The position numbers and the translations under genes are program-made. The notes below the pieces were generated by a model, which saw only the letters and a list, made by a program, of their open reading frames with translations, made no database searches and was not told where the DNA came from. DNA of 64,000 nt from Lepidodermella squamata (lineage: Eukaryota > Animalia > Gastrotricha): assembly GCA_047495785.1 (NCBI GenBank), contig JBLDXI010000042.1:3844001-3908000 (forward strand). The letters run 5' to 3'. Below, piece after piece: positions 1 through 31,412 of the stretch (within the stretch, counting starts at the first letter, position 1; each line of letters opens with the position of its first letter).

Positions 1-969
1 ATGACATCCAGCCCGCCCTTGTCCAGATTGATGTGCGTGGTCATCGGCCGTCCAGCGTGAACTTTGTCAAACGACCAAATGTTATCACTCCGTGAAGAAT
101 TGTTGCTCACTTCGCACATTTTATACTTCAGCCAGCAGGTGCCTGTCGGGTAGACGAAGACGAAACCAACACAACGCTCGCGATAGGTGCGATCACACTT
201 CTGCGCGCATTTCATAGGCGTCGAGCCATCAAAGTTGGCTATATCATTGCCGGGGCAATTGCCACGGTAAACTCGGTAGCCGGGCACTTCTGCAAAACCA
301 GATTTACGCTTATCGATATTGTTTGTTGTTGAGTTTAGACCTACCGTCAATCGGCCTTGGCCACAGCATACTGTCAAACAGTGCGTACCCATTCCACCAC
401 TTAGTCACATTGGAATATTTCGACGACAAAATCTTATAGGGGATAGAGTTATTTCTACGCGTGATACATGCTTCTGGCGCAATTGTTACCTGGTAAAGAA
501 TGTCCCTCTGCTGAGGTGACTGGAACGTCACCATTTCGGACATGTGGCGCTCCTCGCAGATTTGCCACGCATCAGGGCGTAATCGCGAGACAGTATCCAT
601 GTAATAGCACTTGTTGCTGATAGGATCAGCCTCCCAACCGGTTGGACAGAACTTTTTCTTGAAGTACATCGTATACCCACGCCCGGTTGGGTCAACGTCG
701 GTCTCGGGGAGTGGTAGAGCAAGATCTTCATGGCTATATAGCAGGCAACTGCTATACGCTTGGCTGAATGCGACGCTGGAACACCGTTTAATCAGGCAGT
801 AGGTGAAGCATTCGCCGGAGACTGAAGCCGGAAATTCATAACTCGGTTTCAGGCTTACAGGTAAACGGTTGTTGAGTTCCGGATATGTCTGCCAGATCTG
901 CTCAGTTTCGAGGCTGATGGCCAGCGAAAAACAGACACACAGTGATACGAGTAAGCGGTTGTCAAACAT
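1..969 (-). CDS. Secreted PAN/apple + C-type lectin domain protein (3' end runs off the window)
   Basis: Signal peptide MFDNRLLVSLCVCFSLAIS; PAN-like motif ECFTYC..RCSSVAF..SSCLLY; CTL start CPTGW...KCYY...AWQIC...WWNGY. GT-AG introns 489-433 (57 nt, in frame) and 344-290 (55 nt) lead to a second PAN domain (GNCPGNDI..KCAQKC..RCVGFVF..GTCWLKYKMC). Exons 969-490, 432-345, 289-<1. Confidence 0.8.
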
Positions 970-1536
970 GGCCAATAATAATTTTTGAATTATCTGCTTT
1001 TTAATAACAGAAATTTATACTTCTTTCGGGAAAAGTCACTAGCGCCATTAATGATTCAGCTTTTCACGCCAGCCAGATGATAACTTGTTTTTAACCGTCG
1101 ACTTTGTTGCGATGGAAGCTTATACGGGAAAAGCGCTGTTTGAATTGCACGCGATTAATAATTAAGGCGCGGCATTATACGCACCCGAGGTCTGAGTATG
1201 CATTTTTTATGGTGTACGGTATGTTACCTTCTCGTGCGGAATCGATACAAGTCAATTTTCAGAAAAAAACCCAAAGTGTTCAACCATAATTTATTCTTTT
1301 CGTAAATTAGTTTTCCAACAAATTTCGACGGCAGATTTTTGTATTTATGAAGCTAACAGACAGTTCTGAAATGAAATCATCGCATTCGCATTTTTTCCGA
1401 GAGTATAAAAAAGGGTGGATAAATAGTTGATTTATTCAAGTTGTTGTATAATACTGCACATTAATTGTCTCGAAAAAAATTGTTTAATTTGTTTAAAGTT
1501 GATGTTACATAATTTAGAATTGAATAAAATTGCGCG

Positions 1537-1793
1537 CTAAAAATGACAGTACATAACAGACGGTAGGTAGTTGTTGATAAGTGATATGAGGCCGTTGATG
1601 CACATAAATAGCAATGAATTGTTGACGTTATTGATGATGACAAAGATGAAAGACAGGTGATGATGTAATAAGAACGACGACTGCTGAAGCCGGCCATCTG
1701 CCGACGGCCGAACGCGGTGGTTGAGCGCCGAGGAAGCAGCTCGGCTGCACGCCGTCGAATCGACGCGAACACTCGATGACGTCGCAGAGGTAC
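1537..1793 (-). CDS. ace: Putative alternative last exon of the cholinesterase (Ser/Ala-rich, then hydrophobic; H/GPI-like)
   Basis: Acceptor TTTCCAG ending at 1794. The phase-1 junction from exon 3823-3784 gives an open 85-aa frame (GTSATSSS..STACSRAASS..LSFIFVII..LLFMCINGLISLI..). AATAAA on the minus strand at 1436-1431. Confidence 0.55.
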
Positions 1794-3108
1794 CTGGAAA
1801 TCGATGCATTATTAATGATTCAGTTCGAGTCATTCAAGTGTGTAACAACAGAATAAGAAAAGGCCGTATTGACAAGCTTTGAACAATAGAGCAGAAAGTT
1901 GTGTTTTCTTTTTTCAGGCTTATGGTGGGGACATTATAAATCGATTAAGATCATTAATTCCTAGATGACTAATATTTCTAACTTACTTTTTCAAATTATA
2001 ATTTATAGCTGAAGTAATTAGCATCATTTCCGACTGATACGAATGAATGCTGATTTCAGCTTTTTACAAGACTTCGCGCAAAAAATCGATTTACATCCCG
2101 TTTATGCGCACAATTGCTTCCAATTGCTTCCAATGGTGGTGGCTTCCAATAAAAGGCGAATAAATTCCCTTTTAACTAGTGAAAAATATTGTCTTCCGCT
2201 GCTCAAGCAATAGCGTTAGCCATTCTGACCTGGGAAAGGACAATTTTTACCCTCAGACATGGCCAAAAAACGAGAACTATAATGCCAGCTTGACCTAGGA
2301 TGCCCTGGACGATGTCGAAAATCAATAGGAGACGTAGAATCGTCAAAAGATTACTCAAATTCGTAAAAAAAATGAGCAACTTGTGCGATAGAAATTCAAG
2401 TTTTCGTTCACTACTCTTGAATTTGTGTATTTTCATGAGCTGAAACTAGCCCAATCCAATATCGATATCCAATATAGATTGTTCTAAAATTGATGAAAAA
2501 ATTCCCGAGATCTAAATCTGGAGAATATATTTTGTATTTTGTTCCAATAGTAGCCCATTCTGTAATTGTAGACGAGGGCTGATGATTCAAGTCGGTTCGA
2601 AAATATAAAAAATGTGATTCACCAAAAATTCAGTTTCAAATGTTTCTATATTGCGATAGAAACAACGGTATTCGAATTTAACTGTGGACAAGCGAACCTT
2701 AATTGAGAGATCTTACAAAAACTCAAAATATGCCACAATTTTGACACTTTCGAGGCGTTTAGAGGACCCAAGTTAAAAGATTTTCAGATTTTAAATTTTT
2801 TGATTCGCTATTTTTTGAACGTCATCAATTTTTCAAAAACTCATTTTCAAATTTTAAAATATATTAAAATATTTTTTTATCAAATTTCCTCGCTTGATCA
2901 ACGCCATATACACCTAATATTAATAGTAATTATATTGAGTAATAAAAAATTAAAATATTAAAATTTTGTAAATATCGGTCTATTGTTTCGCCATATGTAT
3001 TTAAGAGTTGACTGACTGAACGTGGCAATGTAACCAGTAGGTGATGAGTGAAAGAATTTTCTTCAATCTCTGAGAATCCTCAATGGAATCTTTCTTCTTC
3101 TGTCTTCT

Positions 3109-6100
3109 TCACAAGTCAAGATTGTCTTCCTCGTCGTCGTTCGCATTCATCCTCGCCTGCTGCTTTCGCGACTGTTGCGGAGAAGGGGCGCAAATTTTAT
3201 TGTTAACTCGGTTCGGGCTGGTATAGGGTGACGGCACACCAGGTTGTCGCTTAGCGTTAGTTGCCGTTGCGGCGGTAAATCTAGCAAACTGAGCCTCCCA
3301 TTCAGGCAAAAGATCATATTTCCAGTGGTAGAAAGATTTCTTCCAGTCGGTTTCGACCCGCCCAACGTCAGCTGGAAAAACATTAATTCAACCAATTAAT
3401 TGGCGTGTTAAAATCTAAATTTTACTACGTAAATTCGTAAAATCAGGCTAAAATCTACATTTTTCTATCGGATGCTATGTTGTATTTAAAAAATGATTGA
3501 AAAATAGAGTACACACCTTTGGATTGTATGCAGAGTAGGTGTTAGTGAGTTGAGATTGGATGTCAATCGAGCGGTATTTTCATTCCATTCTCTAGGCAGG
3601 CGCACTCCGTCGGGTTCAACATGGCACATGGAAACCACGATCAATTTTCAGTCAACTCTTTCAACATCATGGCGAGCAAAAAACCGATAGAGAAAGAAAC
3701 AGAAAAAAAAGATATAACAAAAAATTGAAATTCATCGTGCATGAAAAATCAATGCAAGTTATCAATCAAATTTCATTCCATACCGGATAAGGCATCGAGT
3801 TTTGGAAGGTATCCGTGCCAAAACTAGTTGAAAAAAATAAGAAAAATTAGCGTGAAAATTGTGTTAAAAGGCGACTTACGGCGCATTCTTGGGCCTTGAT
3901 CGAGGTGCCAACTGAAGGTTGGCGCTTCGTGACGAGCGCGTCGACGCTCAACTCGAGGAATGTTTTTTCGTAGTAACTATACTCGGGCCACGGCGGAAGT
4001 TCTAAATTGGCCTGGTTAGGACTTGTTCGGTCGCGAATGTTTGGATCACTAAAATCGTGATTTTAGAATATTATATGTAAAATTTGAAAGAAATATTTTG
4101 CTCACCCAAATTTCGCAAAGTTGGTCCAGTAGGCCATCATGAAGCGAGACAGCATCTTCTCCTCGTCTGTATAAGGCTTTGAGTAGTTGAAAGGTTCGCC
4201 GAAAATGAAGCAGATCTCGTCGCCATGCAATACGCCCATCCACGCCGGCCAAGGCACCTGTTCAGAAAAATACAAAAATAAGTTTAAAAAATTCGGAAAA
4301 ATAAACAGATCAATTGGGGAAAATATTTAAAAATACAAGCATTCAATTTCGCATTTCGCAGAGCATGCTTCTGATCAAAAATGAATCGTGTGAAAATCCA
4401 GCTTTTTAGAACCATTTTTCGATTTGTTAATCGATTATTTCGATTAAAGGGAAATAACAACTTTTCACTATCAATACAGGCAGTCCCATTTAAACCATGA
4501 CTCATAAGTTGTGCAAACAATTTCTTTTTTTTTGGGAATTTATGCAGGTAATTAATCCATAATTTTTAATTTCCGAAGGCATCGCTCTCAGCTTTCATCT
4601 ACGATTTCGGCGAAAAAATTACCGAAGAAAACCGCAATACCTAACTGCAACCGCTGCATGGTAATTTTTGGTATTTTACCCGTTTAACCTAAAATTCTTC
4701 TGATTTTTCAAAATCCAAAAATTGAATATTTGAATACTAAATTATTATTCTCATAGCGTTTAGAATTTTCCTGGCAATGAGAATTGACTTTGCCTCTCAT
4801 TTTTTGACTTTCTGATCATTTTCATAAAATTTTCTCCGTTTGCGTTGCTAATGGGACATGCCGTATTTTTTTAATTAAAAAATATTTATATAATTTAATC
4901 CAAATTTATATTTATTTTATTTTATTTATTTATTTTAGTTTTTAAATAATTTACCTGGCTTGACCGCTGTGCGAAGTAATAAAGGAAGACTTTGTGTTTC
5001 GAATACCACATATCATTCTCCGGAATCGACGAGTAGATCGACTCCGGGTTGCGCATCGCCGGCATGGGACTCGCAGCACCGTCACCGCCGCCGCCGCCCG
5101 CCGCCGCCGCTGCCTGTTGCTCGGGGCTGGTCAGCGGCTGCTGCAGGTAGCTGAACCCGGACGCAAAGCTGCGCTTCAGCCTCACGTAACGCACCGAAGC
5201 GTCGTCGTCATCACTCGGATTTTCCGCCAGATTGCTCTCGCCGCGATTCGACGCCGGCGCGTCGTTGGCGTAGTCGGGCGGCGGCTCGGGCTTACCCGGC
5301 GGCGGCACGAGCGGCGCCGGCGGCAGTTCGACGTAGCTATCCGCCCAACTGACAACCGGGCAGGCAAACGCCCAGTCGCCGGTCGCCGAGTCGACGGCGC
5401 TCAAAATGTCCTGGCTGGTGATAACCGGCAGCCGCCAGGGCGTGTACTGGAACTCGATCGCGTCTAGCACGATTTGACTCGACGACCGATTGAAGTGCGG
5501 GTAGAAGGCGAAAAAGTCGCGGATCAAGTCAGAGTAGACGCGAGTCGTAAAATTCATCTGCCGGTTAGGCGCGCGCGGGTGTTTGAACAACTGGAAGCCT
5601 TTTGTTGTGTACAGCATAAAGTAGGAGCCTTCGTTCTTGTTCAGCCCGCCCATTATTGACACGTTGTAGTACTGGCCGTCGGCGAGCATGTCACGCGGGT
5701 GGCGCGGCAAAAAATCACCGTCGATTACTGGCACGAATGGAAACTGCGCGTAACCGGCTGGGTCCTGTACAAAAAAAATTCGCGAAAATTAGCAAAAAAT
5801 TCGGAAAAATTCGAAAAAAATGAAAATTAAACAAGCGAAAGTGAAGAGCACTAAAATGCAAAATATAGCAAAATTTTTCAGTGTTTTTTCGCTAATAATT
5901 AAGCAAGAATAAAATTCTTAAAAATCAAAAGTGAGCAGTGATTTATTTTCAATTTCAGTCAAATTACCCTTGTTCCATTCTGGAAACATTTCATTTTTTA
6001 GAAAAATAAATAAGAGAAGAATGTAAAGGTAGTCTGAAGGCGTAGAAATTAAGCTGTCACACGCTGTAAAGAAGTTGACGTAAACACGTATCCGGCATAG

Positions 6101-8618
6101 ATAAAAAGCCAAAAATTAGATCAACGCAGATTCATAGCCAATTCGGAAATTAAAAAATCAGTCTACAGGTACAGCAGGCCGCTACAAAATTAATCGAAAA
6201 CTCTTTCGTTAAAATTATTAACCCGGTCAGGCTGAAAATTGTAAAATATATTCATTATTTTTACTTGGAATACTCTATGAAAACCCTTGATCATTTTTCA
6301 TTAATATTTAATTGACTCAAATACAACGCATATTTCATTATTTTACCGCCAAATTTCGATATTCCGACCACGATTCTAATAACTCGGGAAAATCACGTAT
6401 GAATATGATTAGCTTCAACTGACAAACGGACAATCAATAGTAAAAATTGAGTTATCTAATATGATTAAATTCTCAATTAATACATAAAAAACCGGACACC
6501 GACAACTGACGAAAAATATTAATTTACGTCATTTCTGTAACTCAATTACCCTATCTCAAGGGATTCCCGAATTTGGCAGCGGAAAATGTTCTTTTATTTG
6601 ATCTATTTCTCTGTCTCAAATGTCCGTTAATCAGCTGAGCTAAAAAGTAGGAATTGCCGAAAATTAATGTTGAACTTTGATTATTACCTCAGGTTTAGTG
6701 ACGAGAAATATTTTGAAATAAAAAATCTGAACCCACGTAATATTATTTCCGAAGTCGCATCTCAATTGTTTAGGAATATATGCAATTTTTGTCGATTTTT
6801 CTTAATTAATCGAAATTCCGACAAAAATTAAATAATTGATTATGGAAGCGACTAATGCCTAGATTTCAAGTTCCAGCACTGAATTCAGCCCCAGTTTGGT
6901 TTCTTGAGTTCAACGCCTTGCTTGAACTCAATTTTTAATTTAATTCAAATTTCAAATTAGAAGGCAATTTTCTAGATATTCGAGGGTAAAAGATAGCTAA
7001 TTTGGAAAATATTCAAAAAAATTTAGGGCTTTGAATTAGCGCTGGAACCTCAAAAATGTAGACCCAGTTATGAGCGATTTGATATTTCAAGGTTTTTTTC
7101 AAGTGATGCGACTCTTACCGCAGATAGCACGTTCCACTCTTCTTCGGGCAGTCGTAGGAATTGCTGCGAGCGTAAGCAGTCGATTTTCCACCGCATCTCA
7201 TCGGCGGCGCTTTTCGGGCTGCTCGGCGGCACCGGCGGCGGCGCGCCATACATCGAGTCGGCATCAGCCGCCGACTGGCTGAGCGAGGCGGACGGCGGCG
7301 GCGCGCAGGTGGACGCAAATTTCGTCACCAGCTCATTCGACCGCCACATGGCCTCCTCCTGCGTCAACACCGCCCAGCCGGACAGCGCAGAGGCCGACTG
7401 GATAACGGCACGTTGGAAGTAGTCGCGGCTGTGCGGCGAGAGGAGGTGCAGCGCGACCGAGGCGGCGCCGGCGCTTTCGCCGAAAATCGTCGTGTTGCGA
7501 CAGTCGCCGCCGAAGTTGTGCACGTTCTCGCACAGCCACTTGAGCGCCAGCCATTGGTCCCACATGCCCATGTTGCCCGGCGCGTCGTCTGTGCCGAAGT
7601 ACAAAAACCCTAACGCGCCGAGGCGGTACTGCATCGACGCGACGATGATGTTGTTATACCCGGCCAGAATCCGCCCGTCGTACAGATCGAGCGTTGTCGT
7701 GCCGCTCGTGAAACCGCCGCCGAAAATCCAGACTAGAACCGGGTGAAGGCCGCGTTGTTGCTTCGAGTCGCCCTGCCTGCCGCCCTTGTTGAAGTCGTCC
7801 AACACGCGGCGCGGCACCCATAAGTTGAGGTAAAGGCAGTCTTCCGACATTTCGGTGTTCGCGTTCCACATCATCGCGCCTTCGAACGTGTCGAACAACG
7901 CGTCGAGCAGCTGCGGGCATGAGTTCGGCTTCGACGTCGCGTCTAGTATGTCCTTCCACGGCTGGCGGGGGCTGGCCTTCCTAAACCGCCGCTCGCCAAC
8001 AGGCGGTTCTGCGTAGGGGATGCCTAAAAATTCGTAGACCTCGATGTTAGTATTCGGCAGTTGCACGAGCCGGCCCTGCACTAGGCCCATGTTTGTCGCG
8101 ACAGTGCCGGACGGGCCCGGCGCGGTTGCTTGCCGCCGCGCTCGATTTGACGATGTATTTGCGTATTTTGGGTGTAGTTTTGCGTCGATTTTCGATGATG
8201 AGTTTCTTGATGAGTATATCGGCGAGGTTGAAGCAGCAGGCACGTTGATAGTTACAGCTATTAGGACGATGCTTAGAGTAGTTAACAGCAGCCAGACGCG
8301 CCGCCGGTGCCGGTGGTGGAACCGAGGAGGATCCGCGTCTCGCCATCGAGGAGGAGGTGGAGGTGGAGGAGGAGAAAGACGTTGTTGGCAGCTGATTAAA
8401 GATGAGGAGTTATTAGCGCTAATTATCGAATCATTATTATCTTCCGAATCGAAGCCACTTATACGGGACCGAGACGTCACCGCATCGTCCGGTTCGACCC
8501 GACTAGGCGGCCCGGTTTGCGGTGACAGGTGCCTGGGTCGGCGACAGGTCGATTTCAGCGGTTTCGAGGCGGCTGCAGCTATTGTGTTGATTGTTGTTGA
8601 TTTCGTCCGATGTGACAT
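3109..8618 (-). CDS. ace: Acetylcholinesterase/cholinesterase, T (WAT-domain) isoform, about 977 aa
   Basis: Exons 8618-7119, 5764-4955, 4257-4106, 4048-3880, 3823-3784, 3371-3109; all junctions GT-AG and in frame. Motifs FLGIPYAEPP, WNAN (choline-binding Trp), SEDCLYLN, GGGF, FGESAG (Ser), NKNEGSYF (Glu), GVLHGDEI (His), YWTNFAK, ECAFW. Last exon encodes ADVGRVETDWKKSFYHWKYDLLPEWEAQFARF. Confidence 0.93.
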
Positions 8619-11600: not shown

Positions 11601-14600
11601 CACATTCCATGTTCACTCGAAGTAATTGAATTAGTATAGCTTTTCAAATGGACCTTGGTTTCAGCTGAACCAAACTCGGATGTGGAACCAGATTCCCAAT
11701 CATTCCGACCCACAATTTGGGAAGTTTCGAAAAGCATAATGGGGGCGACAAAATCCACCAAAATTGGTAGACGATTCGAGAAAAGACAATATATGGCATT
11801 GGAAGGCTGATGAACCAATTTTTTTAGATTTGGCTAGCTACCAATCTAGGTCGAGGTGGTCCATCAATTTTCTAAATTTACACTTCGCGACATTAAGATT
11901 CTAAAATTACGAATGGTTGCTAAGGAAATTGCGTATTTAGCCAAATATTTGCAAAACGCGTCCTTAGCAACGAGTTTTTCGCCAAGGTAAAGAACCGGAA
12001 CAAAGTGATCATAGGTGAATACGTAGAAGCAGGAGCCAACGTCAGAAGAGAGTTGAGTGCGTGGGCATGTACATCAGCGGCTGCTGTTTTACGTCGACGC
12101 ACATTTTTGACACCTCATTATAGCAGGGTGTCTAAAACGATAATAGCGCGAAATAACGCGCCAGTTTTTGTTTTTGAGACGCACCATCCTACTCCTACTC
12201 CTACTTCCTTACAACTCGCAGTCGAAATGCTCAGCCCACGTAAACACGGCTAGGAGATGTTTCAGCTTTCAGCCAAAGGATGAGAGCTGGCCACTGTAAC
12301 AATAACAAGTCATGTGTCTATGAAAGCGTTCCGCGTTGTTGCCTCTTTTCATCGACCGAGGGCGATAGGGGCAGGCGAGAGGTAAAAGCTATAACGCAAA
12401 ACACGTGGTTATAAAATGAGATATTATATTGGTGTCTATTATTTTTGTTTTTATAGCTAAATTATTGCGCGATAAAAAAAGCGCGGCGAGTGAGAGCGAG
12501 TGGGAGAGAGCGCGCGGCAAGACGCCAGCTAACCTGGTAATGAGTAAGAAGTCGGCCCAGACAAAAAACGTTTAGTTGTTCTTGAAAAATAATCCCTATT
12601 ATATAGCGAAAAAACACGCCATAAAACACAGGGCTGAGACAAGCGAGTTGAAAGATAAAAGAAGATTTTTCGGCTCCGAGAATAAAGCGGTGCCGGCGTT
12701 TAAGTGGAGGTGGCTATCCATTTTATTACGAGTGATGGCACTCGTACTCGATGGAGTGATGATAGATCCATGTCGGCGGCGAAACGCTTGATTCTTTCGC
12801 GTTCGCGTTTTTTGCGCGCACGCGCGCGCGCACAGCTAATGACGATTATTATCAAAGCGATTATTGTCTATTATACAGGCGGGCCTTCAATCAAAAATGG
12901 TAACCTATTTACACGGCGTTTCGAGAGCTTGTTTTGTACGCTCAAGTATTATTTACGTTAACTAGTGTATAGCATAATATATCCGCTAGATGTATTTTAA
13001 ATAATAGGTATAGTTCCGGCTTATCCACGCCACCAGACTCTGCTGGCGCTATATCACTGCTGCGTACACTCATCAAGCTCCGAAAAAACTGTACGTGTTT
13101 TGGCCCATCAAGTATACGGACGCAGCACATAGCTGACGTAAGCAAGGTTGGAGGGTTGAATACTAGAGATAATAATAATTTTATTGTTATATAACACCCG
13201 TTATAAATCGAAAATAAAACCCAAGTGTTATTTATTTGATTAAGGCGATAATTTTGTTTTATATATCACCGATACCGAAACGGCCTCTACCGGTTTTAGC
13301 TAGGCACGTATATATAGATAATTAATATCTTACTCTGTTTGCTTATTGCCGAAATAATCAAAGGCGATCTAGATATATACTGAAAGATGAGAGCTGAGAG
13401 TTCGAGTGCGAAGCGAAAAATAATAAAAAATCCAGCTTAAAAAAAGTAGAAGAGACAATAATTTTATATTATTATTCGAATAAAAATAGTTCAAGGCTTG
13501 TTGAGTGAAGAGAGGCCAACACTATATTTAGGTACTCATAATCGCAAGTCACACATATACGGAGGCGAGAAATTAAACTTTCCGCATGGGTGATTTTACT
13601 GAACAGTTAAAAAAATGCGCTACACGCGCCGTAATTAACGAGTCTATTCAAACTGCAGACATTGATACACCGCGGCCGCAACTAGCCAGGACACTTGACT
13701 ATTGATACATGTGTTTTTTCGTACTACAGCAGGGGTATCAATTTACGCGGCGAAACCCTTGTACCTGTCGTTTTGAAGGGTTTGCTAAATGATACACCGA
13801 AAACTAGTTCAGTGCCAAAAGCGCGGAAAGTTTGATGAGCCACAAGAAAAACGGTTTATTGGCGATGAACACAATACATATTGCTGATGGGTGACTATAG
13901 AATTTCAGGCGCCTAGATCATCCGAAAGACAATGGATATTATAAGGCGGTGCGAGCGCCTGGGATATTATAAGCGCATGCAAAGTCCGTCAACAAATAAA
14001 CAAGATCTAGGACTATAAACGGCGGCTGCGAAATTGGGCGCGATTGGGATATGCATAACCGATGAGAAAGAGACGAAACACGCCGCGTCCTATACCCAGC
14101 ACCACAAGCCGCATATAATAAAGCCTATTAAGACTAGATATAAAAAAATCTCCCAATTTTTGCGCAATTAGTACAGCTCAATCCTTAATAAAAAAAATGA
14201 TATTATTCGCGAAAAAAATGTTTGGACTAAAGGAAATAATTTAATTAAAAGAACGGAAGATCGCGCCTATATATAGGAAATTGAGAATAAAAATCGGAAG
14301 GAATTGAACCTTAATGTTTTATTAATTTTTTTAGATATTTAACCAGCCTTGGGTTATTTTATTGGTCATTGGTTGGCAGACAGGCCTGCTCTTAACGCTG
14401 GCAGGGTGGCTCGAGGCACGCGGTTTTCCCGCGGGTAAAAAAATTGCCTAAATTATTGATGACGTTTTCATGCGTCGACAAAATGTTCAATCTAGGCCAC
14501 TTTGAAATCATGTTAAAAAACCACGTAAAACGATGACGGCAGGATGCACTTGTGTCGCACTGATGACAATTTAAATGTTATCTAGATCGATGCAAATTTT

Positions 14601-16064: not shown

Positions 16065-19000
16065 TCATACAAATATTGCCTCGTCGCTGCTGTAAATGGA
16101 TGATAGCCGGCAACTTTCAGCCGGCGCAAGTGGCGCGTAGCACAGCGCACTTGCTTCACGCTTCGAAATAACAGCCGGCGATGAAGCTGTGATTACAGCG
16201 TCAGTTTTAGCCACTACTTCACCATTTTTAAGGCGGTTATTATTATTGTCGTTATTATTAACTTTTTCGAAACTACGTTTCCGCTTTTGCACCGGTGACG
16301 CGAACGCGTCGAGGCGTTCCGCTTGAGCGATTTTCTCCTCCTCGTGTGTGAGTTCCAACAATGATTCACCCGTATGCTCGATGGGTGCCTGCAATGTGTT
16401 CGTTTTATTAGCCGCAGGTGGTCGGTTGTTATTCTCAACATCAGCTTTAGGAACGTTTTTCCCTGCTTGGACTTTCGGTTTTCGTCTGTATTGGCTTTGA
16501 CCAGTTCCCAACAAATTGCCGAATATAGCTGTTGTTTGACGACTAATAATCGCTGAGACATTCGTCCTGTGAAGATAAAATACATCTCTATTAGTAAAAA
16601 TTTGAGTTAATTTTTGCAGGCTGCTGAACCGAAATTGGCTAAGCGGAACCTAGCCCGGATGTTATTAGAATATCTAAGAAGAAACCCAGAAATAAAAAAA
16701 ACCGAGAGCTATAAAAACCTCTAGACCTCTAGATTTCTAGCGGTCATAGTTCGTGAGTTAAACTTCAATCTATCAAATTTGATTTTTCATCGAAATATTT
16801 TTAAACGACACCATTTGCTTTTCAATTTTCAAGATTCAAAGGATCCCCGATATTTGGAACTATCTGGAACCAATAAGAATTTAAATTTATTAGAGTGTGC
16901 TGATGTCTGAAAGATAAAAATTAGCAACCTAAGATTAGAAAATAGCTAAAAAACTTCTACAAGAAGTGATGTAAAAACTGGTCGAATTTCGGACATTTTT
17001 CCATCACTTCAATACCGAACCAAAAATGCTATGACGAGTAAAGCAAAATTGATCATTAATTTATGAACCTTCTCCTCCTTAAGTCAACCCAAGCTGCATT
17101 GTTCCTGAATGTCAAGTTCACAGAATCTGGTAATCATCCTCAAGTTCGATAAAAACCATAACCAATCTTACCTGAAAGTTTCATTGACAGCATAGTAGAT
17201 GAAAGGATTCGCCCAAGAGTTGACGTAGTGCAGATAGAACACAAAATGCTGCGCGTCGAGGCTGAGGAAGCTCAAATAGCCAGATTTGAACAGCAAGGCC
17301 GGCGTGGTCGATGCAACGAAGACAATAGTAACCAGCAAGACAGTTAGCAGAGTTTTGAAGTATAATTTCAGCGTTTTCGCTTGGATAGTGTGATGACTGG
17401 AAGATGAAGGCGATCCGATGAAAGCTGATTTTATCGTTGTGCTTTTCCGAATAGGTTTCGAAGATTTGGCCGCGTGATCTTGTTGGTTCGCGCCGCCGTT
17501 GGTTGGTTGTTGCGGCGTGTTCCAGCTTTGTTTAGCCAGGTAATTTTCGCGCTTCTGTTGCACGGCGGCATGTTGTAGTCGCCGGCGAATGGCCCACCAG
17601 AATACGAAGAAATACGCAACGCATGTTACAGCAAGGCATGCGATGAAAATCGCCGTGTTCATGTGGGACAGAAAGAGCCTGTGTTGTGGGAGAAAAGTTT
17701 GGGATTACCAACAAAAAGCATTAAAGCATTAAAGCCCAGCATGTTTTCGGCAAATATTTTTATTTTTCTTTCCCTATTGACACGTGCCATTCCGATAGAG
17801 AAAAATTCGGGGACGAAGAATCTGAAAACCGCATATTTTTATCATCTACCGTTGTTGAGATATTCCAGTGTCAAGTTGTCACGTGACCTTACCTGTTGTC
17901 ACACCTGAACGATTATCTCAAGAACGGTGATAGCCTAGGAAGCCGCTCTCAAAGAAAAAGTTTATCAGCGTGATGAGATCTATCTGGAAATGCATTCAGT
18001 TGGGTTATAGGTGATACTTCGGGCAAATCGATTTTGATGACACTTTAGTGCAATTCGGTGACAGTCCCAAAAAACGGCCCCTAGCTCATCACCAAGCCGA
18101 GACACTGGTCATTTATCAGTTTTCCCCGACGTGATACGATTTCCCAACATGGAGATATGCCTTGTAGTCACCCTACATGATTTTTTAAATATAATAGGGT
18201 GGGGTGGCAGGAAAAGATGCCGTTGGGCGTTAATGGGTTTTATAAGCTGAAAGCTGAAGGCTGAAACCCACTGATATGCGCTTGACTTCTGCAAGTCACG
18301 ACTCTGTTTCAATCCTGGATACTGGATCTGGAGATTCAGGTTTCTGGAATCGATCAATGTGTACGGCTGGGCTGGGTGGGAACCTCACAGCTTGGGTTCC
18401 AGCATTGCAAGTTAAGACTGCTGCCCCAGATTTTCCCAATGTTAGGATTTCAGGTTTTCTTTTGAATCTCACTTTAAGTGTCATAGGTGGCAGTATAACC
18501 GGTTAGATGAGGAATATAAGTAAAAAATAAGTATCATTCGTTGATTCATTCGTTGAATCATGATGATTAACTCAGACACTTATTACGACTATACATTTTC
18601 GATTGATATGATTAATATATTTACCTGTCCTAAAGAATATCCTCTACCCTGATTACAAGCCTAGCAAATTCTCAGTTCCATCAATTAATTTACCCCGCGT
18701 CTATTTTTGAGATGTACGGGTGTCATTTACGCAATTTCATTCCTTGGCAAGCAACCATATTCCCAATTTAGCGTTGATGGAAAAAATGATCCATGATGTA
18801 AGTCAAATTGTCGGGACGAGAAGGTACTGAGAGAAGGAGCGCGAAATAGAGGGCCCAGCTTCTAATCAACTTGAGCGCATGGTAAAACATGGCTTGTAAA
18901 GAATGTGGATTCTTGCTCAACGGATAAATGCTCTGAAATTCAACGATCAAGATAATTTATCTATCTAATTTTATAAATCACAGAAGCTAACGTAAACACC

Positions 19001-21508
19001 CACTCGATACGCATGCTACTCTGACAAGATCACTCTGATGAGTGTGGATTCATTATGGACAATGCATCGCAGCAACATAGGTATGAAGGTAACTGCGCAT
19101 TTGGCAATATCTTAGTATGTCACTTTTATAGGAATATTTCTTCGTCTTCAAACTACGCAAACAAATTCATATACTATAAAACTAAATCTGCAGAGTGAAT
19201 TATTTATCATTTTGAAAACGGCTATGGCATCGCAAAAGATCTACAAAGCCACTGGTGGCAATAAGTTCGTTTCTATAGCATTCTGTTTGATTATCCTAAG
19301 CCAAGCCGTTGCTTCAGAGCAGCAAAGCGACAGTGGAAAAGTTTTGCGACGTATCATGGACTTACTAGCAGGTAAAAGCCTTGAAAGTTTGAATCAATCC
19401 GTTCTTAATTATATGTCTGTATTGAAGATAATCCAGGAAAGTCTACGTCGAAAATGGTTCTATCGAGCGCTTTGAAACATAAAGCACTTCGACTGATGCG
19501 AATGAGGAAATGCATTGAGATGGTTGGGCGCAATCTGTGCGACAAGAACAGCCAAGGATCTTTTTTCTTATGGGCGAAACTGTACGCTAACGACATTTTG
19601 TCCGGAAAATATGACAAGCAGCTATTTATAACGAAGAAGAGTTTAACTTCTTAATACAAGTCGATTTAGCGTCAATCTGTTCACAATTTTGCAGATGTGC
19701 CAACAATTTGAACATTTAAGCTGACTGATTTTCCGAAATAAACCACTAAGTTTTAGCCTTCAGTTGATTCCCTAGGCTTATATTTCAAAGTAAGTCTTAC
19801 ATTTGTTCGAATGAAAAGTAAACTGGCTGAGCGGTGCATCGTCCTGTGTAGAGATTGAATTCTTGCGGGGTATAGCCCGTAATTTGCTCGACAATTTGCT
19901 CGTTTCCTACAGCAGCTGTGGTCCTTAAAAGCATCGCCGACTCTGAGACGGCTAGCACCGAAGTTTTGTTAACAAACACTTGGCCAGCTGTTGTTGTCGT
20001 CGGGTCTGAAATTTCCGGGTTTTCGATAACGACTTGGTACACGCTGTGGCACAGTGAGGACATTATTGCGAAGGCGAGGGTGGCTACGGCAGCCCCGATT
20101 GCGAAGGCTTTCGTCGCTCTGACTTGGTTGACGTGGCAGAAAGGCACAATGGCGTAGCACAGGCGATCGATAGCGATGCCGGTAACTATGATTGCCGAGT
20201 ATGGAACGCTGGTTATTGTGAACATGTAATAGATGTGGCAGATTATCTCGTAGTTGGCCATGAAGTTTGACAGCAACTGAAAACAAGAAAACAATTCAAT
20301 AACATCATGAGAAACTAAATCGAGAATCCTTTATTATGGATTGGCTCTTTTAAGCATAGGGCTTTTGCAAAGCCGTTAACACATCGCAAAGGGGAGGATG
20401 TCCTGAAAGCTCCAAATTACCTAAACGAATTCGAATGAGTTGCGAAGGCTAAGGGCCATGTTAAAATAAGAAAGCTGATGATTGAAAACCAAAGATTCCA
20501 TTCCTTCAAGCTGTTCGCTCCGAAACAGCAAGTTTAAAATGGAAAGGAGGCAGGAGAATTCAAGGATGTTATTTCAACGAGATGCAACTAAGTGGCTGAA
20601 TGCTGAATGCTGAATGCTGAGATTTTGGTTACCATTTTGACCAATTTGATGCTCCAAAAACATGGCCTGTAATGTTTCCAACTTCCCTAGAGATACCTTG
20701 TAGGCTTCATTTAAATGCTTTCACTTAAATGCATTGTCTATTGGGCGTCTCTCTTCTCTCTTGCTACAGCCATCATGAATGCCTCAGGATTCCTAGATGT
20801 TTCATCTTAACAGAACCCAAAACCCTAAGCGTGTTCACCATATCGACTCGGCAGTCTCTCAATATTGAGGAGATCTTTGATTTCTAAATCTGAGAAGGTC
20901 AAATAAGAAGCGACATCGGGTCTGAAGGCTTATGCTAAGCTTGTAGTCAGAACTTAAGGCTTTGCAAAGAGGACTCAAATTTCGGATTCACTCGGCGATT
21001 TTTTGAATAACCCAACGCCATGCAAGCCTAATTTGATGGCAGTATTTTGAATCCCTCGATTTTCAAACTTTTGGTCCTATACTAATTAGTGCTTCGATCC
21101 AAAGGTGTGAGTTTCTGGTAGACAGGCGAAAGCACTTACCATGTAAACTGTGGCTGGAAGGGTTATTGCACATGTGACAAGATCAGTAATAGCCAAGCTG
21201 GCGATGAGCACTGTTGACGTTTTAACGTGAGCTTCTCGCGATATGACCGCGAGCGACAGGGCGTTGCATACCGTACCAACTATCGAGAACAATATCAGCA
21301 TGGCCGCTATTGCGCTTCTCACGATTGGATCCTCTGGAATCAAACCATCGCTCATGTGTTCCTCGGAATAATACAACTCGCCGTCAGCTTGCAAATCTTC
21401 ATTCGAGTAGCTCGGTACAGATGTGGTGGCGAATAGAAAATCATTGGTTGAAAGGTAAGAGTTGAGATCGGTTGATCTCACAGTCATGCCCATTTCATCA
21501 AATTTCAT
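16065..21508 (-). CDS. Class A (rhodopsin-family) GPCR, peptide-receptor-like orphan, about 617 aa
   Basis: Exons 21508-21140, 20276-19801, 17678-17172, 16566-16065 join in frame. TM1 GTVCNALSL, TM2 SLAITDL, TM3 IAIDRL, long ECL2 with Cys, TM6 FVASTTP, TM7 NSWANPFIYY, helix 8 NETFR. Confidence 0.9.
17848..17928. repeat. Intronic inverted repeat, probably the core of a small non-autonomous element
   Basis: ACCGTTGTTGAGATA (17848-17862) pairs with TATCTCAAGAACGGT (17914-17928), one mismatch. Confidence 0.5.
19224..19654 (+). CDS. Putative secreted peptide/neuropeptide precursor (124 aa) nested antisense in GPCR intron 2
   Basis: Exons 19224-19371 and 19428-19654 joined by a 56-nt GT-AG intron. 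Signal peptide (FVSIAFCLIILSQAVA), RR/RK/GK sites and a C-x8-C motif. TATAAA at 18972, candidate 5'UTR intron 19081-19193, AATAAA at 19737. Confidence 0.65.
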
Positions 21509-25916: not shown

Positions 25917-26137
25917 ACAAATCAATGCATCAAAGCCATTTATTCAGTCACCTTGTGCCAGCTTAAAAAAATTCTTCTATTTAGCACTTTTTAATACCGA
26001 TTTTTCGGCCGGCGATCGGGTGTTTGTAACATGACGTGCCCGCCAAAACTGCGTTTTGTAAAATTCAAATAAAAACAGAGGATTGATGACAATTTTTCTG
26101 TCATTTTTTCCATGGGTCGTACATTTAGGTTCAAGGC

Positions 26138-26700
26138 GAAACCAAAATTGCCTGTTGCAGAACCAAATTTTACATTATACTCAATTCTCCCATAAGTGAC
26201 TTTTCTAAAATTTTTGGAATTAAACAACAATTATTTAGCTATTATTTAAAAATCCAGATAAATAACGTTGGAATTCCCGTGATTTTCTGTATGAGGCCTG
26301 GCCCTACTTATAGAACCCGACAGTCATAACAAATAAAATGGGTTCTTTTACCGGAACCAAATTTTCCTGTAAGAACCAAATTTTGGAATTGTTAATGGGC
26401 CCTATAACTACTTTTCGCAACTTCAAAGGTTGCCATGGTTGACCATGCAAAATCTAATTCTAATTAAATAGTCATTAATTTCATTGCGAAATTCTGCGTA
26501 AGGCGCAGTGTTCAATTCTGAAATCGTGATTTGCCTCAAATTCCTAACTCTTTTTATATTTTGGTTCCGCTACAGCAAACTTGTTTCCGGTAAAATATAT
26601 TCTGAAAAAAGTATTCGAAAATGGCACCTTTCATAAGTTTGCCATTTCGTTCCGCTACAGTCAATTTATATTCCGCAACAGGCAAATGTGGTTCCAGTGG
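26138..26700. mobile_element. Degenerate repeat with many GAACCAAA/GGTTCCGCTA motifs; related copy at about 41140-41390
   Basis: Repeated GAACCAAATTT on the left and inverted GTTCCGCTACAG motifs on the right. Internal AAATTCTGCGTAAGGCGCA resembles the reverse complement of 41251-41270. Confidence 0.45.
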
Positions 26701-30300: not shown

Positions 30301-30984
30301 TCGAAATTCTGAAACTTTTTCTAATTTTTAGGCTAGATTTTCCAACTTTTTCCAACTTGGGTAGGGTTAGATTTGATTTAAGCTCACCTTTCCAGCAACA
30401 TGGCAGCTCAGCACTTGACCCTGAGGCGACATGAGTAGGTTGACGTATTCGATAACATCGAGGAAGAGCTCGTTACGGCGGTATTTGATACCCTCACGAC
30501 GCCAGCCAATCTGCCCAGTCACTTGACTAGTCAACTGAGACGCCGGCTCCTTACCAGCTGTCTGCGCCCGGATGCCCTGCTGCATGATAAACGACTTCAA
30601 ACTGCCGGCTTCGGTCGTTTGCGGGTAGCCATAGTCAAGGACTTCGTCCAGAATTTCGTAAATGAGAACGAAATTGTTTTTGATATTGTCCTCGGAGAGT
30701 TTGCCGAAATACGCGGCCATGACTTCCATCATTTTGTACATGAATTCGAAAACAAGGGCTGCGTTGATGTTTTGCCGCGTGACGGCGCACAGCCAAATAT
30801 TCGACCGTTTAATGTGGAAAAACGACGTCCGAGAAATGTTCATGACAGGCGAGCGAACTTGCTGGCGGGCATGGATGACGTTGACTCGAAACGCATCGAC
30901 CGCATTCCTGCCAATATCGTCGCGATAGATTCGAGAAATCAACACCTCGCCCTTGTGGTTGTATATAAAAACACCACCAATCAT
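27376..30984 (-). CDS. AP2M1: AP-2 complex subunit mu, 434 aa
   Basis: Exons 30984-30388, 30112-29652, 27622-27376. Highly conserved sequence from [47 protein letters not shown] to [16 protein letters not shown]. Confidence 0.98.
28150..28860 (+). mobile_element. Decayed Ginger2/KRBA2-SCAND3-like integrase transposon C-terminal fragment in AP2M1 intron 2
   Basis: [44 protein letters not shown] followed, in another frame, by the Cys-rich [14 protein letters not shown]. This matches my recollection of that family's C-terminus. An upstream coding-like stretch (28153-28400) has an internal stop. Confidence 0.7.
29300..29351. repeat. Intronic hairpin
   Basis: ATTTTATGGTCTAAA / TTTAGACCATAAAAT form perfect 15-bp arms, extended inward by CGGAC/GTCCG. 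Confidence 0.7.
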
Positions 30985-31412
30985 TTTTCAATAAATAAAA
31001 AATGATCTAAAAAATCGAGTCAATTTTAGAATAAGTCTGACTTTTGAATATTTAATTGCAAGACAACATCTACCGTTATTTGCACTATATATATAATTTT
31101 GTATGATTGGTGAGCATCCATTCAGTCGTCGTCATATGTTTTTTGCAGCTGAGATTCTTGCCTAATACACGACAGAAAAATTGTAGCCATAAAATTCGCA
31201 GTGAGCATATTATTACAATTAGTGTTAAAAATGACAAGCAAAAAAGACAGAATTTTCCAGATATTTACAACACGAGGAATGAAGAACGCGCACGAGAACA
31301 AATACAAAATAAGATGATGGTGGGACCTCAAATGAAAACAAATAATTTCTGTTTGGCCAAGATGTAGAAAGATTCGGTTTTCAAGTGGGGCTAGGTCCAG
31401 ATTAGACACAAC

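Follow-up and report, generated by a model that had tools for sequence, protein, structure and literature searches.

It is a long-standing question how a single cholinesterase gene came to give an enzyme both in a tetramer-forming and in a lipid-anchored form. Splicing of a single gene to alternative T and H tails is textbook knowledge for vertebrates. The question is raised here by a locus of the gastrotrich Lepidodermella squamata (GenBank assembly GCA_047495785.1, contig JBLDXI010000042.1, positions 3,844,001 to 3,908,000 of the forward strand), a stretch of 64,000 nucleotides that we refer to as the window. Its minus strand carries, at 1537-8618, a cholinesterase gene followed by two candidate last exons, one encoding a T (WAT) peptide and one a hydrophobic, H-like tail. 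An earlier reading of the letters alone (the sequence-only reading) had proposed that this animal makes both forms from the one gene, with T before H. We found two in-frame tail exons after a phase-1 donor at 3784, every element lying on the minus strand where that reading had placed it, and T is indeed located before H. The splice from this donor to the H exon is observed in RNA, and use of the T exon is inferred. We consider it probable that an ace-1-type cholinesterase gene has its 3′ end here, with one phase-1 donor (3784) serving two alternative acceptors, and that this T-then-H module was inherited from an early protostome ancestor. The parts of the gene are as follows.

7119..8618, minus strand: exon 1 (3′ end in phase 0), long N-terminal extension and first half of the catalytic domain, with the FGESAG active-site serine; donor gtaaga at 7118.
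4955..5764, minus strand: exon 2 (3′ end in phase 0), mid catalytic domain with the VPVIDG motif and the context of the acidic triad residue; Pfam COesterase match; RNA joint 4257<4955.
4106..4257, minus strand: exon 3 (3′ end in phase 2), catalytic His motif HGDEI and WTNFAK; Pfam match; RNA joint.
3880..4048, minus strand: exon 4 (3′ end in phase 0), end of the catalytic domain; an RNA contig covers 4022-3880 and joins 3823.
3784..3823, minus strand: exon 5, last common exon, FW..YLPKL; phase-1 donor G/gtatgg; RNA joints 3880>3823 and 3784>1793.
3106..3371, minus strand: alternative tail exon T, WAT-type amphiphilic aromatic peptide with a distal Cys and an acidic end; stop at 3108-3106.
1794..3105, minus strand: interval from the T stop to the H acceptor, intron for the H form and probably 3′ untranslated region in the T form.
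1537..1793, minus strand: alternative tail exon H, coding part, Ser/Ala-rich linker with one Cys, hydrophilic spacer and about 47 mostly hydrophobic residues; stop at 1539-1537.
1270..1536, minus strand: 3′ untranslated region of the H form, ATTAAA at 1488 and AATAAA at 1436 and 1295; the end at 1270 is an estimate.

Judged by its translations, the gene encodes a cholinesterase in which the context of the catalytic triad is intact. Three minus-strand open reading frames match the COesterase family (PF00135) of Pfam, namely 8618-7071 (E 4.3e-91), 5734-4925 (3.7e-13) and 4275-4105 (4.8e-13), and the triad motifs and the choline-binding Trp context can be read directly (FGESAG, the NKNEG context, HGDEI and MWN..SEDCLYLN). 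Homology searches were run exon by exon. The donor of exon 5 lies four residues past the LPxL motif that closes cholinesterase catalytic domains, and it is in phase 1. Both tail exons continue in frame from it: the T exon, an open frame of 87 codons, follows a pyrimidine-rich ...ttccag acceptor ending at 3372, and the H exon follows a ...tttccag acceptor ending at 1794.

Which of the two acceptors is used in transcripts? Two public runs contain the stretch: X1 (2015, labelled as RNA by a guess) and X2 (DNA, with 0.98 of the sampled words). The RNA evidence comes from X1, in the form of assembled contigs, which drop rare variants, compared with positions 1400-7300 of the window. Record 1 of X1 (683 nucleotides) covers 4022-3880, skips 56 bases, covers 3823-3784, skips again to 1793 and continues unbroken past 1400; its depth of 26.8 is the highest at the locus. 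A third spliced joint in X1, 4955>4257, skips 697 bases with CT..AC ends on the plus strand, and all parts skipped by the X1 contig have GT..AG ends on the strand of the gene. None of the spliced joints is present in X2. X1 behaves as RNA, because it contains spliced joints, and donor 3784 is spliced to the distal hydrophobic exon, this being the dominant form in the run. The hydrophobic exon had been predicted to join this donor, and the contig bears that out; it is the opposite of a locus in which the T junction alone is found and 1537-1793 is unspliced or untranscribed. The RNA contig extends to about 1294, and the distal poly(A) signal is therefore probably the one used in the H form. Many further joints between opposite strands, at distances of about 105-110 bases, look like mates of 51-base reads that were joined end to end, and not like biology.

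The same contigs gave one separate observation. Contigs from the RNA run as well as the DNA run match a 33-base piece of the intron upstream of the T exon (3637-3669) and continue into unrelated sequence to either side of it. The piece is probably a short repeat that also occurs at a highly expressed locus elsewhere; the depth bin 3567-3763 is inflated by it.

The identity of the proximal exon was addressed with a profile of 12 non-redundant T peptides (nematode ACE-1, tardigrade and fish), searched against the 2126 six-frame fragments of the window. The frame of the T exon was the only match (21.2 bits, E 2e-5), and it lies beyond chance, since the next best of these fragments scored 6.8 bits. 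The exon carries the aromatic series W-x3-F-x2-W-x7-W-x3-F-x2-F, with Trp at +0, +7 and +15 and Phe at +4, +19 and +22. Moreover, its peptide aligns without gaps to nematode ACE-1 tails, with which it has the A-D-V-G start in common, and the first Trp is the 10th residue past the junction. On profile and alignment the exon at 3371-3106 is a true homologue of the T (WAT) peptide, and this assignment of the sequence-only reading is upheld.

Some features of the exon count against such an identity. The Pfam model AChE_tetra (PF08674) gives it 15.3 bits, below the cut-off of 25, and reverse transcriptases of retrotransposons in the same genome score 14-17.6 bits with that model; the AChE_tetra score for the T exon therefore proves nothing by itself. 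A Pro lies within the T helix, between the second and third Trp, and the single Cys is found 27 residues from the end, against the usual 3-4.

A genome-wide search with AChE_tetra for paralogous T exons was also carried out, and all 8 matches were rejected as retrotransposon reverse transcriptases. A W-x3-W-x3-F stretch in the non-LTR (long terminal repeat) reverse transcriptases of this genome brings them to the 14-17.6 bits given above, and it gives rise to false T-peptide calls when six frames are scanned. When the 121-Mb genome was searched with the T-exon and H-exon peptides, no copies of either were found outside the window. A word search of a protein database with the two frames was blank, a result that says little, as the length filter of that search leaves out full-length proteins. 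Finally, no homologue of PRiMA scored over the cut-off of the Pfam PRIMA1 model in this genome, and we know of no ColQ or PRiMA partner in this animal.

The distal exon raises a different question, namely what kind of tail it encodes. In general layout it resembles an H tail, with its single Cys (residue 15 of the exon) in a Ser/Thr/Ala-rich stretch of the kind expected of a small-residue linker, candidate small-residue omega sites and a hydrophobic end. Its best 19-residue hydropathy, 1.64, falls inside the range of ten compared H tails (1.42-2.44). Other properties speak against an ordinary H tail ending in a glycosylphosphatidylinositol (GPI) signal. The tail is 85 residues long, versus 38-57 in the ten compared tails; its two hydrophobic blocks are interrupted by an Asn-rich stretch; the final 12 residues are less hydrophobic, and the last 20 have a mean hydropathy of only 0.82, versus 1.3-2.2 in most of the compared tails. 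Related genes, moreover, have tails of transmembrane type (the tail of mite P0112 and a cassette exon of Pristionchus). Instead of a GPI-addition signal, the distal tail could thus be a membrane-spanning or hydrophobic C-terminal anchor, or a retention or degradation tail, that is kept on the mature protein. Given the H-like layout and hydropathy, and given that invertebrate H peptides are non-homologous and variable (PMC3045457), we lean away from this explanation, while regarding it as a serious possibility.

The claim that both forms are made from one gene stands in part: the H junction is seen, and the junction 3784>3371 was absent from all X1 contigs. RNA cover of the T exon is thin, consisting of short contigs at 3190-3285 and 3320-3370 with a depth of 2.5-4.6, versus 26.8 for the H contig. 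It is not clearly higher than the sparse cover of the downstream interval (2882-3035, 2160-2327 and about 1900-1955; depth about 2.5-3.2), so that it may come from pre-mRNA. Between the T stop and the H exon (1794-3105) the minus strand contains no AATAAA or ATTAAA. To these points against T use may be added that there is only one RNA run for this locus and that its label is a guess, though one borne out by the spliced joints. An H-only gene would account for them, the T exon being a relic that splicing always removes and the thin RNA over it being unspliced precursor, on a par with the intronic pieces at 2160-2327 and 2882-3035; the Pro in the helix and the Pfam score under cut-off would fit as well. 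We nevertheless think this unlikely. An open frame of this length with all key aromatic positions and a strong acceptor would not be expected in an unused AT-rich intron. RNA cover starts at 3370-3372 and is absent from the 195 bases upstream of the T acceptor (3372-3566), and the tardigrade and clam genes of the orthologous clade use both tail exons.

An origin of the 3784>1793 joint in chimeric assembly, or in another locus or organism, is scarcely credible: the data are assembled contigs and the organism code of X1 is unlike that of the DNA run, but the joint has canonical GT..AG ends, keeps the frame and shares its contig with a second canonical joint (3880>3823), the contig differs by one letter over 574 aligned bases, and both tail peptides are unique in the genome.

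For a gene with one donor and two acceptors we propose the following scheme. Choice of the distal acceptor at 1793, for which splicing is observed, would give an enzyme ending in the Cys-bearing Ser/Ala linker and the hydrophobic tail. By analogy with H subunits, this form may be assembled into disulfide-linked, membrane-bound dimers via a GPI signal or a membrane-spanning tail. Choice of the proximal acceptor at 3371, probably in a minority of transcripts, would give an enzyme ending in the T (WAT) peptide, an amphiphilic aromatic helix that could by the same kind of analogy bring about tetramers, possibly on a proline-rich partner. These consequences for the protein are drawn from work on vertebrates and nematodes (among others PMC2289553, PMC3045457). 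The T messenger probably continues through the H exon to a common poly(A) site, because neither type of poly(A) signal occurs in the stretch that separates the T stop from the H exon and because the thin RNA cover has a similar depth from 3370 to the H acceptor and is absent upstream of 3371. The whole of 3371-1270 would then form one composite last exon, in which two 3′ splice sites compete, a mirror image of exons 5a/5b of human ACHE.

Is this arrangement peculiar to the gastrotrich? It is not: public annotations of tardigrade and mollusc genes already include single genes with both a T and an H isoform. A search for the same exon pair in related ace genes, which the sequence-only reading had suggested, found it in Ramazzottius varieornatus, Paramacrobiotus and Mya arenaria. 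In R. varieornatus the deposited proteins RvY_02659-1 (667 residues, T) and RvY_02659-2 (655 residues, H) are identical over 617 residues; the former ends in a T peptide scoring about 48-52 bits with our T profile and the latter in a short tail of a Cys plus a hydrophobic stretch. The order at the locus is catalytic end (21033), T exon (within 20626-20396) and H exon (about 20001-19873). In the bivalve Mya arenaria, RefSeq isoforms X1 (634 residues, T, 38 bits) and X2 (626 residues, H) are identical over 585 residues, with the catalytic end at 16739, T at about 20753-20908 and H at about 30920-31045. The counterpart gene of Paramacrobiotus has a T exon followed by an H exon of weak similarity. 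The tardigrade and Mya genes have the same donor as the window gene (phase 1, last base G, four residues past LPxL), and in all of them the T exon starts with Ala. AATAAA is found close behind the T stop in Mya (293 bases) and in Paramacrobiotus, so the detail of the 3′ end may differ between lineages.

T-type tails at the same junction were also found in rotifer-like metagenome contigs. No T-like exon was found within 10 kb of the H-type genes of an annelid, a sea slug, a rotifer and amphioxus (ChE1). One of the rotifer-like contigs, Ga0209930_1001899 (28 kb), contains two T-type cholinesterase copies in opposite orientation, in a palindrome-like layout. Other kinds of tail variation were seen in the same survey. 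The deposited 769-residue model of Pristionchus pacificus ace-1 has, after the catalytic end and before the T exon, one additional in-frame exon (locus 26104-26418), encoding a Ser/Thr-rich stretch, a transmembrane-like segment and a basic motif resembling a stop-transfer signal; it may be an alternative membrane-anchoring cassette. In the second cholinesterase gene of Paramacrobiotus metropolitanus, the counterpart of RvY_02661, a 14-residue mini-exon (locus 13272-13313) ends isoform X2 before the T exon of isoform X1, a different kind of tail switch in a neighbouring paralogue.

The relationships of these genes were examined in a quick maximum-likelihood search, with half-length data for the window gene. 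The tree united the window gene with nematode ACE-1, arthropod ace-1, the tardigrade genes and one gene of Mya arenaria (SH-aLRT 96; internal support 81-87), leaving out the H-only annelid and mollusc group, the ace-2-like arthropod group, amphioxus and fish. The closest relative, P0001, is a metagenome fragment with 65% identity overall and 78% over 265 aligned tree columns; its contig (3.7 kb) ends within exon 3, upstream of the tail region. The nematode SL1 pattern is absent from the L. squamata genome.

The tardigrade and bivalve genes of this clade have the order catalytic end, T, H and an identical split site, and for this reason the module was most likely inherited from an early protostome ancestor. 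Between the two origins that had been offered for the switch, convergence or an older origin, it is the older one that gains weight from the tardigrade and bivalve order and split site, with both isoforms annotated. To judge from the gene models compared, having both tails on one gene looks shared among protostomes and not unique to this animal. A more specific proposal, to which we give an even chance, places a T-first-then-H module, on a phase-1 donor four residues past LPxL, in the ace-1-type gene of the last common protostome (possibly bilaterian) ancestor. Nematodes, with a single type of tail on each gene, arthropods, with H alone, and vertebrates, in which H precedes T, would then all show derived states.

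With the window gene, an arrangement that is conserved and apparently unremarked gains one more case, from another phylum. We found no description in the open literature of single-gene T/H splicing in protostomes, nor of the T-before-H order, many subscription journals lying outside the scope of that search. The same split site, phase and T-then-H order in a gastrotrich, tardigrades and a bivalve make shared protostome ancestry a testable hypothesis. The cases also provide small animals, easy to work with, in which one could study how the tail is chosen and which partner the T peptide binds without ColQ and PRiMA.

Further features of the gene and its surroundings lie away from the tail exons. 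The N-terminal extension encoded by exon 1 contains a run of eight Pro followed by R-W (window 8300-8420, minus strand), just upstream of a hydrophobic signal or anchor segment. In vertebrates, T peptides wrap proline-rich peptides; the Pro8 stretch of this extension should be cytosolic or cleaved. A prediction of the complex of four T peptides with this Pro-rich stretch of the gene's own N-terminus gave a score of 0.10, pointing neither way. Exon 2 contains an insert of about 110 residues (window 4990-5330, minus strand), passing from Pro-rich through acidic to Ala/Gly-rich, which has no counterpart at that place in other cholinesterases and is reminiscent of the hydrophilic loop of insect enzymes. 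The next gene downstream (window 310-975, minus strand) encodes a Cys-rich protein of 221 residues with a hydrophobic start and no Pfam match.

Lastly, the window gene was compared with the known systems. In vertebrate ACHE the catalytic domain ends just past LPKL and is followed by alternative coding sequence for T, which gives tetramers, or H, with a Cys and a hydrophobic GPI signal (PMC3045457, PMC2289553). The last exon of human ACHE is composite, and either of its two 3′ splice sites may be used; the H-specific part (5a) comes before the T part (5b) (PMC5388418). Among vertebrates the H variant is patchy, and H peptides are reported to have arisen repeatedly (PMC3045457). The window gene is like vertebrate ACHE in that one gene carries alternative tails after the catalytic end, and probably also in its composite-last-exon logic. 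It differs in having T before H, one extra residue before the third Trp and an H tail about twice as long.

In nematodes the tail types reportedly lie on different genes, T on ACE-1 and hydrophobic tails on ACE-2, ACE-3 and ACE-4, according to the work of Arpagaus and Combes. The T peptide of the window gene is like that of nematode ACE-1, a member of the same clade, in its ungapped alignment, its A-D-V-G start and its Trp/Trp/Trp/Phe spacing of 0/7/15/19. Unlike the nematode genes, the window gene carries both tails, and the extra hydrophobic cassette of Pristionchus ace-1 lies before T, not after it. Arthropod ace-1 falls in the same clade, and its H-type tail likewise has a Cys in a Ser-rich linker; only hydrophobic tails were present among the arthropod models retrieved, whose loci were not scanned for a T exon.

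The closest likenesses are with tardigrades and the bivalve. RvY_02659 and the Paramacrobiotus gene have the identical phase-1 donor four residues past LPxL, with the T exon first and the H exon second. Unlike in the window gene, the tardigrade T peptide lacks a Cys and scores far higher (about 48-54 bits), and the tardigrade H tail, of 38 residues, is typical of a GPI signal. The introns of Mya arenaria are much longer than those of the window gene (4 kb and 10 kb), its T exon, with AATAAA behind the stop, looks like a true separate terminal exon, and the Cys of its T peptide lies four residues from the end, as in vertebrates and unlike that of the window gene. In split site, phase and the order of catalytic end, T and H, the acetylcholinesterase-like isoforms X1 and X2 of Mya are nonetheless like the gastrotrich gene.

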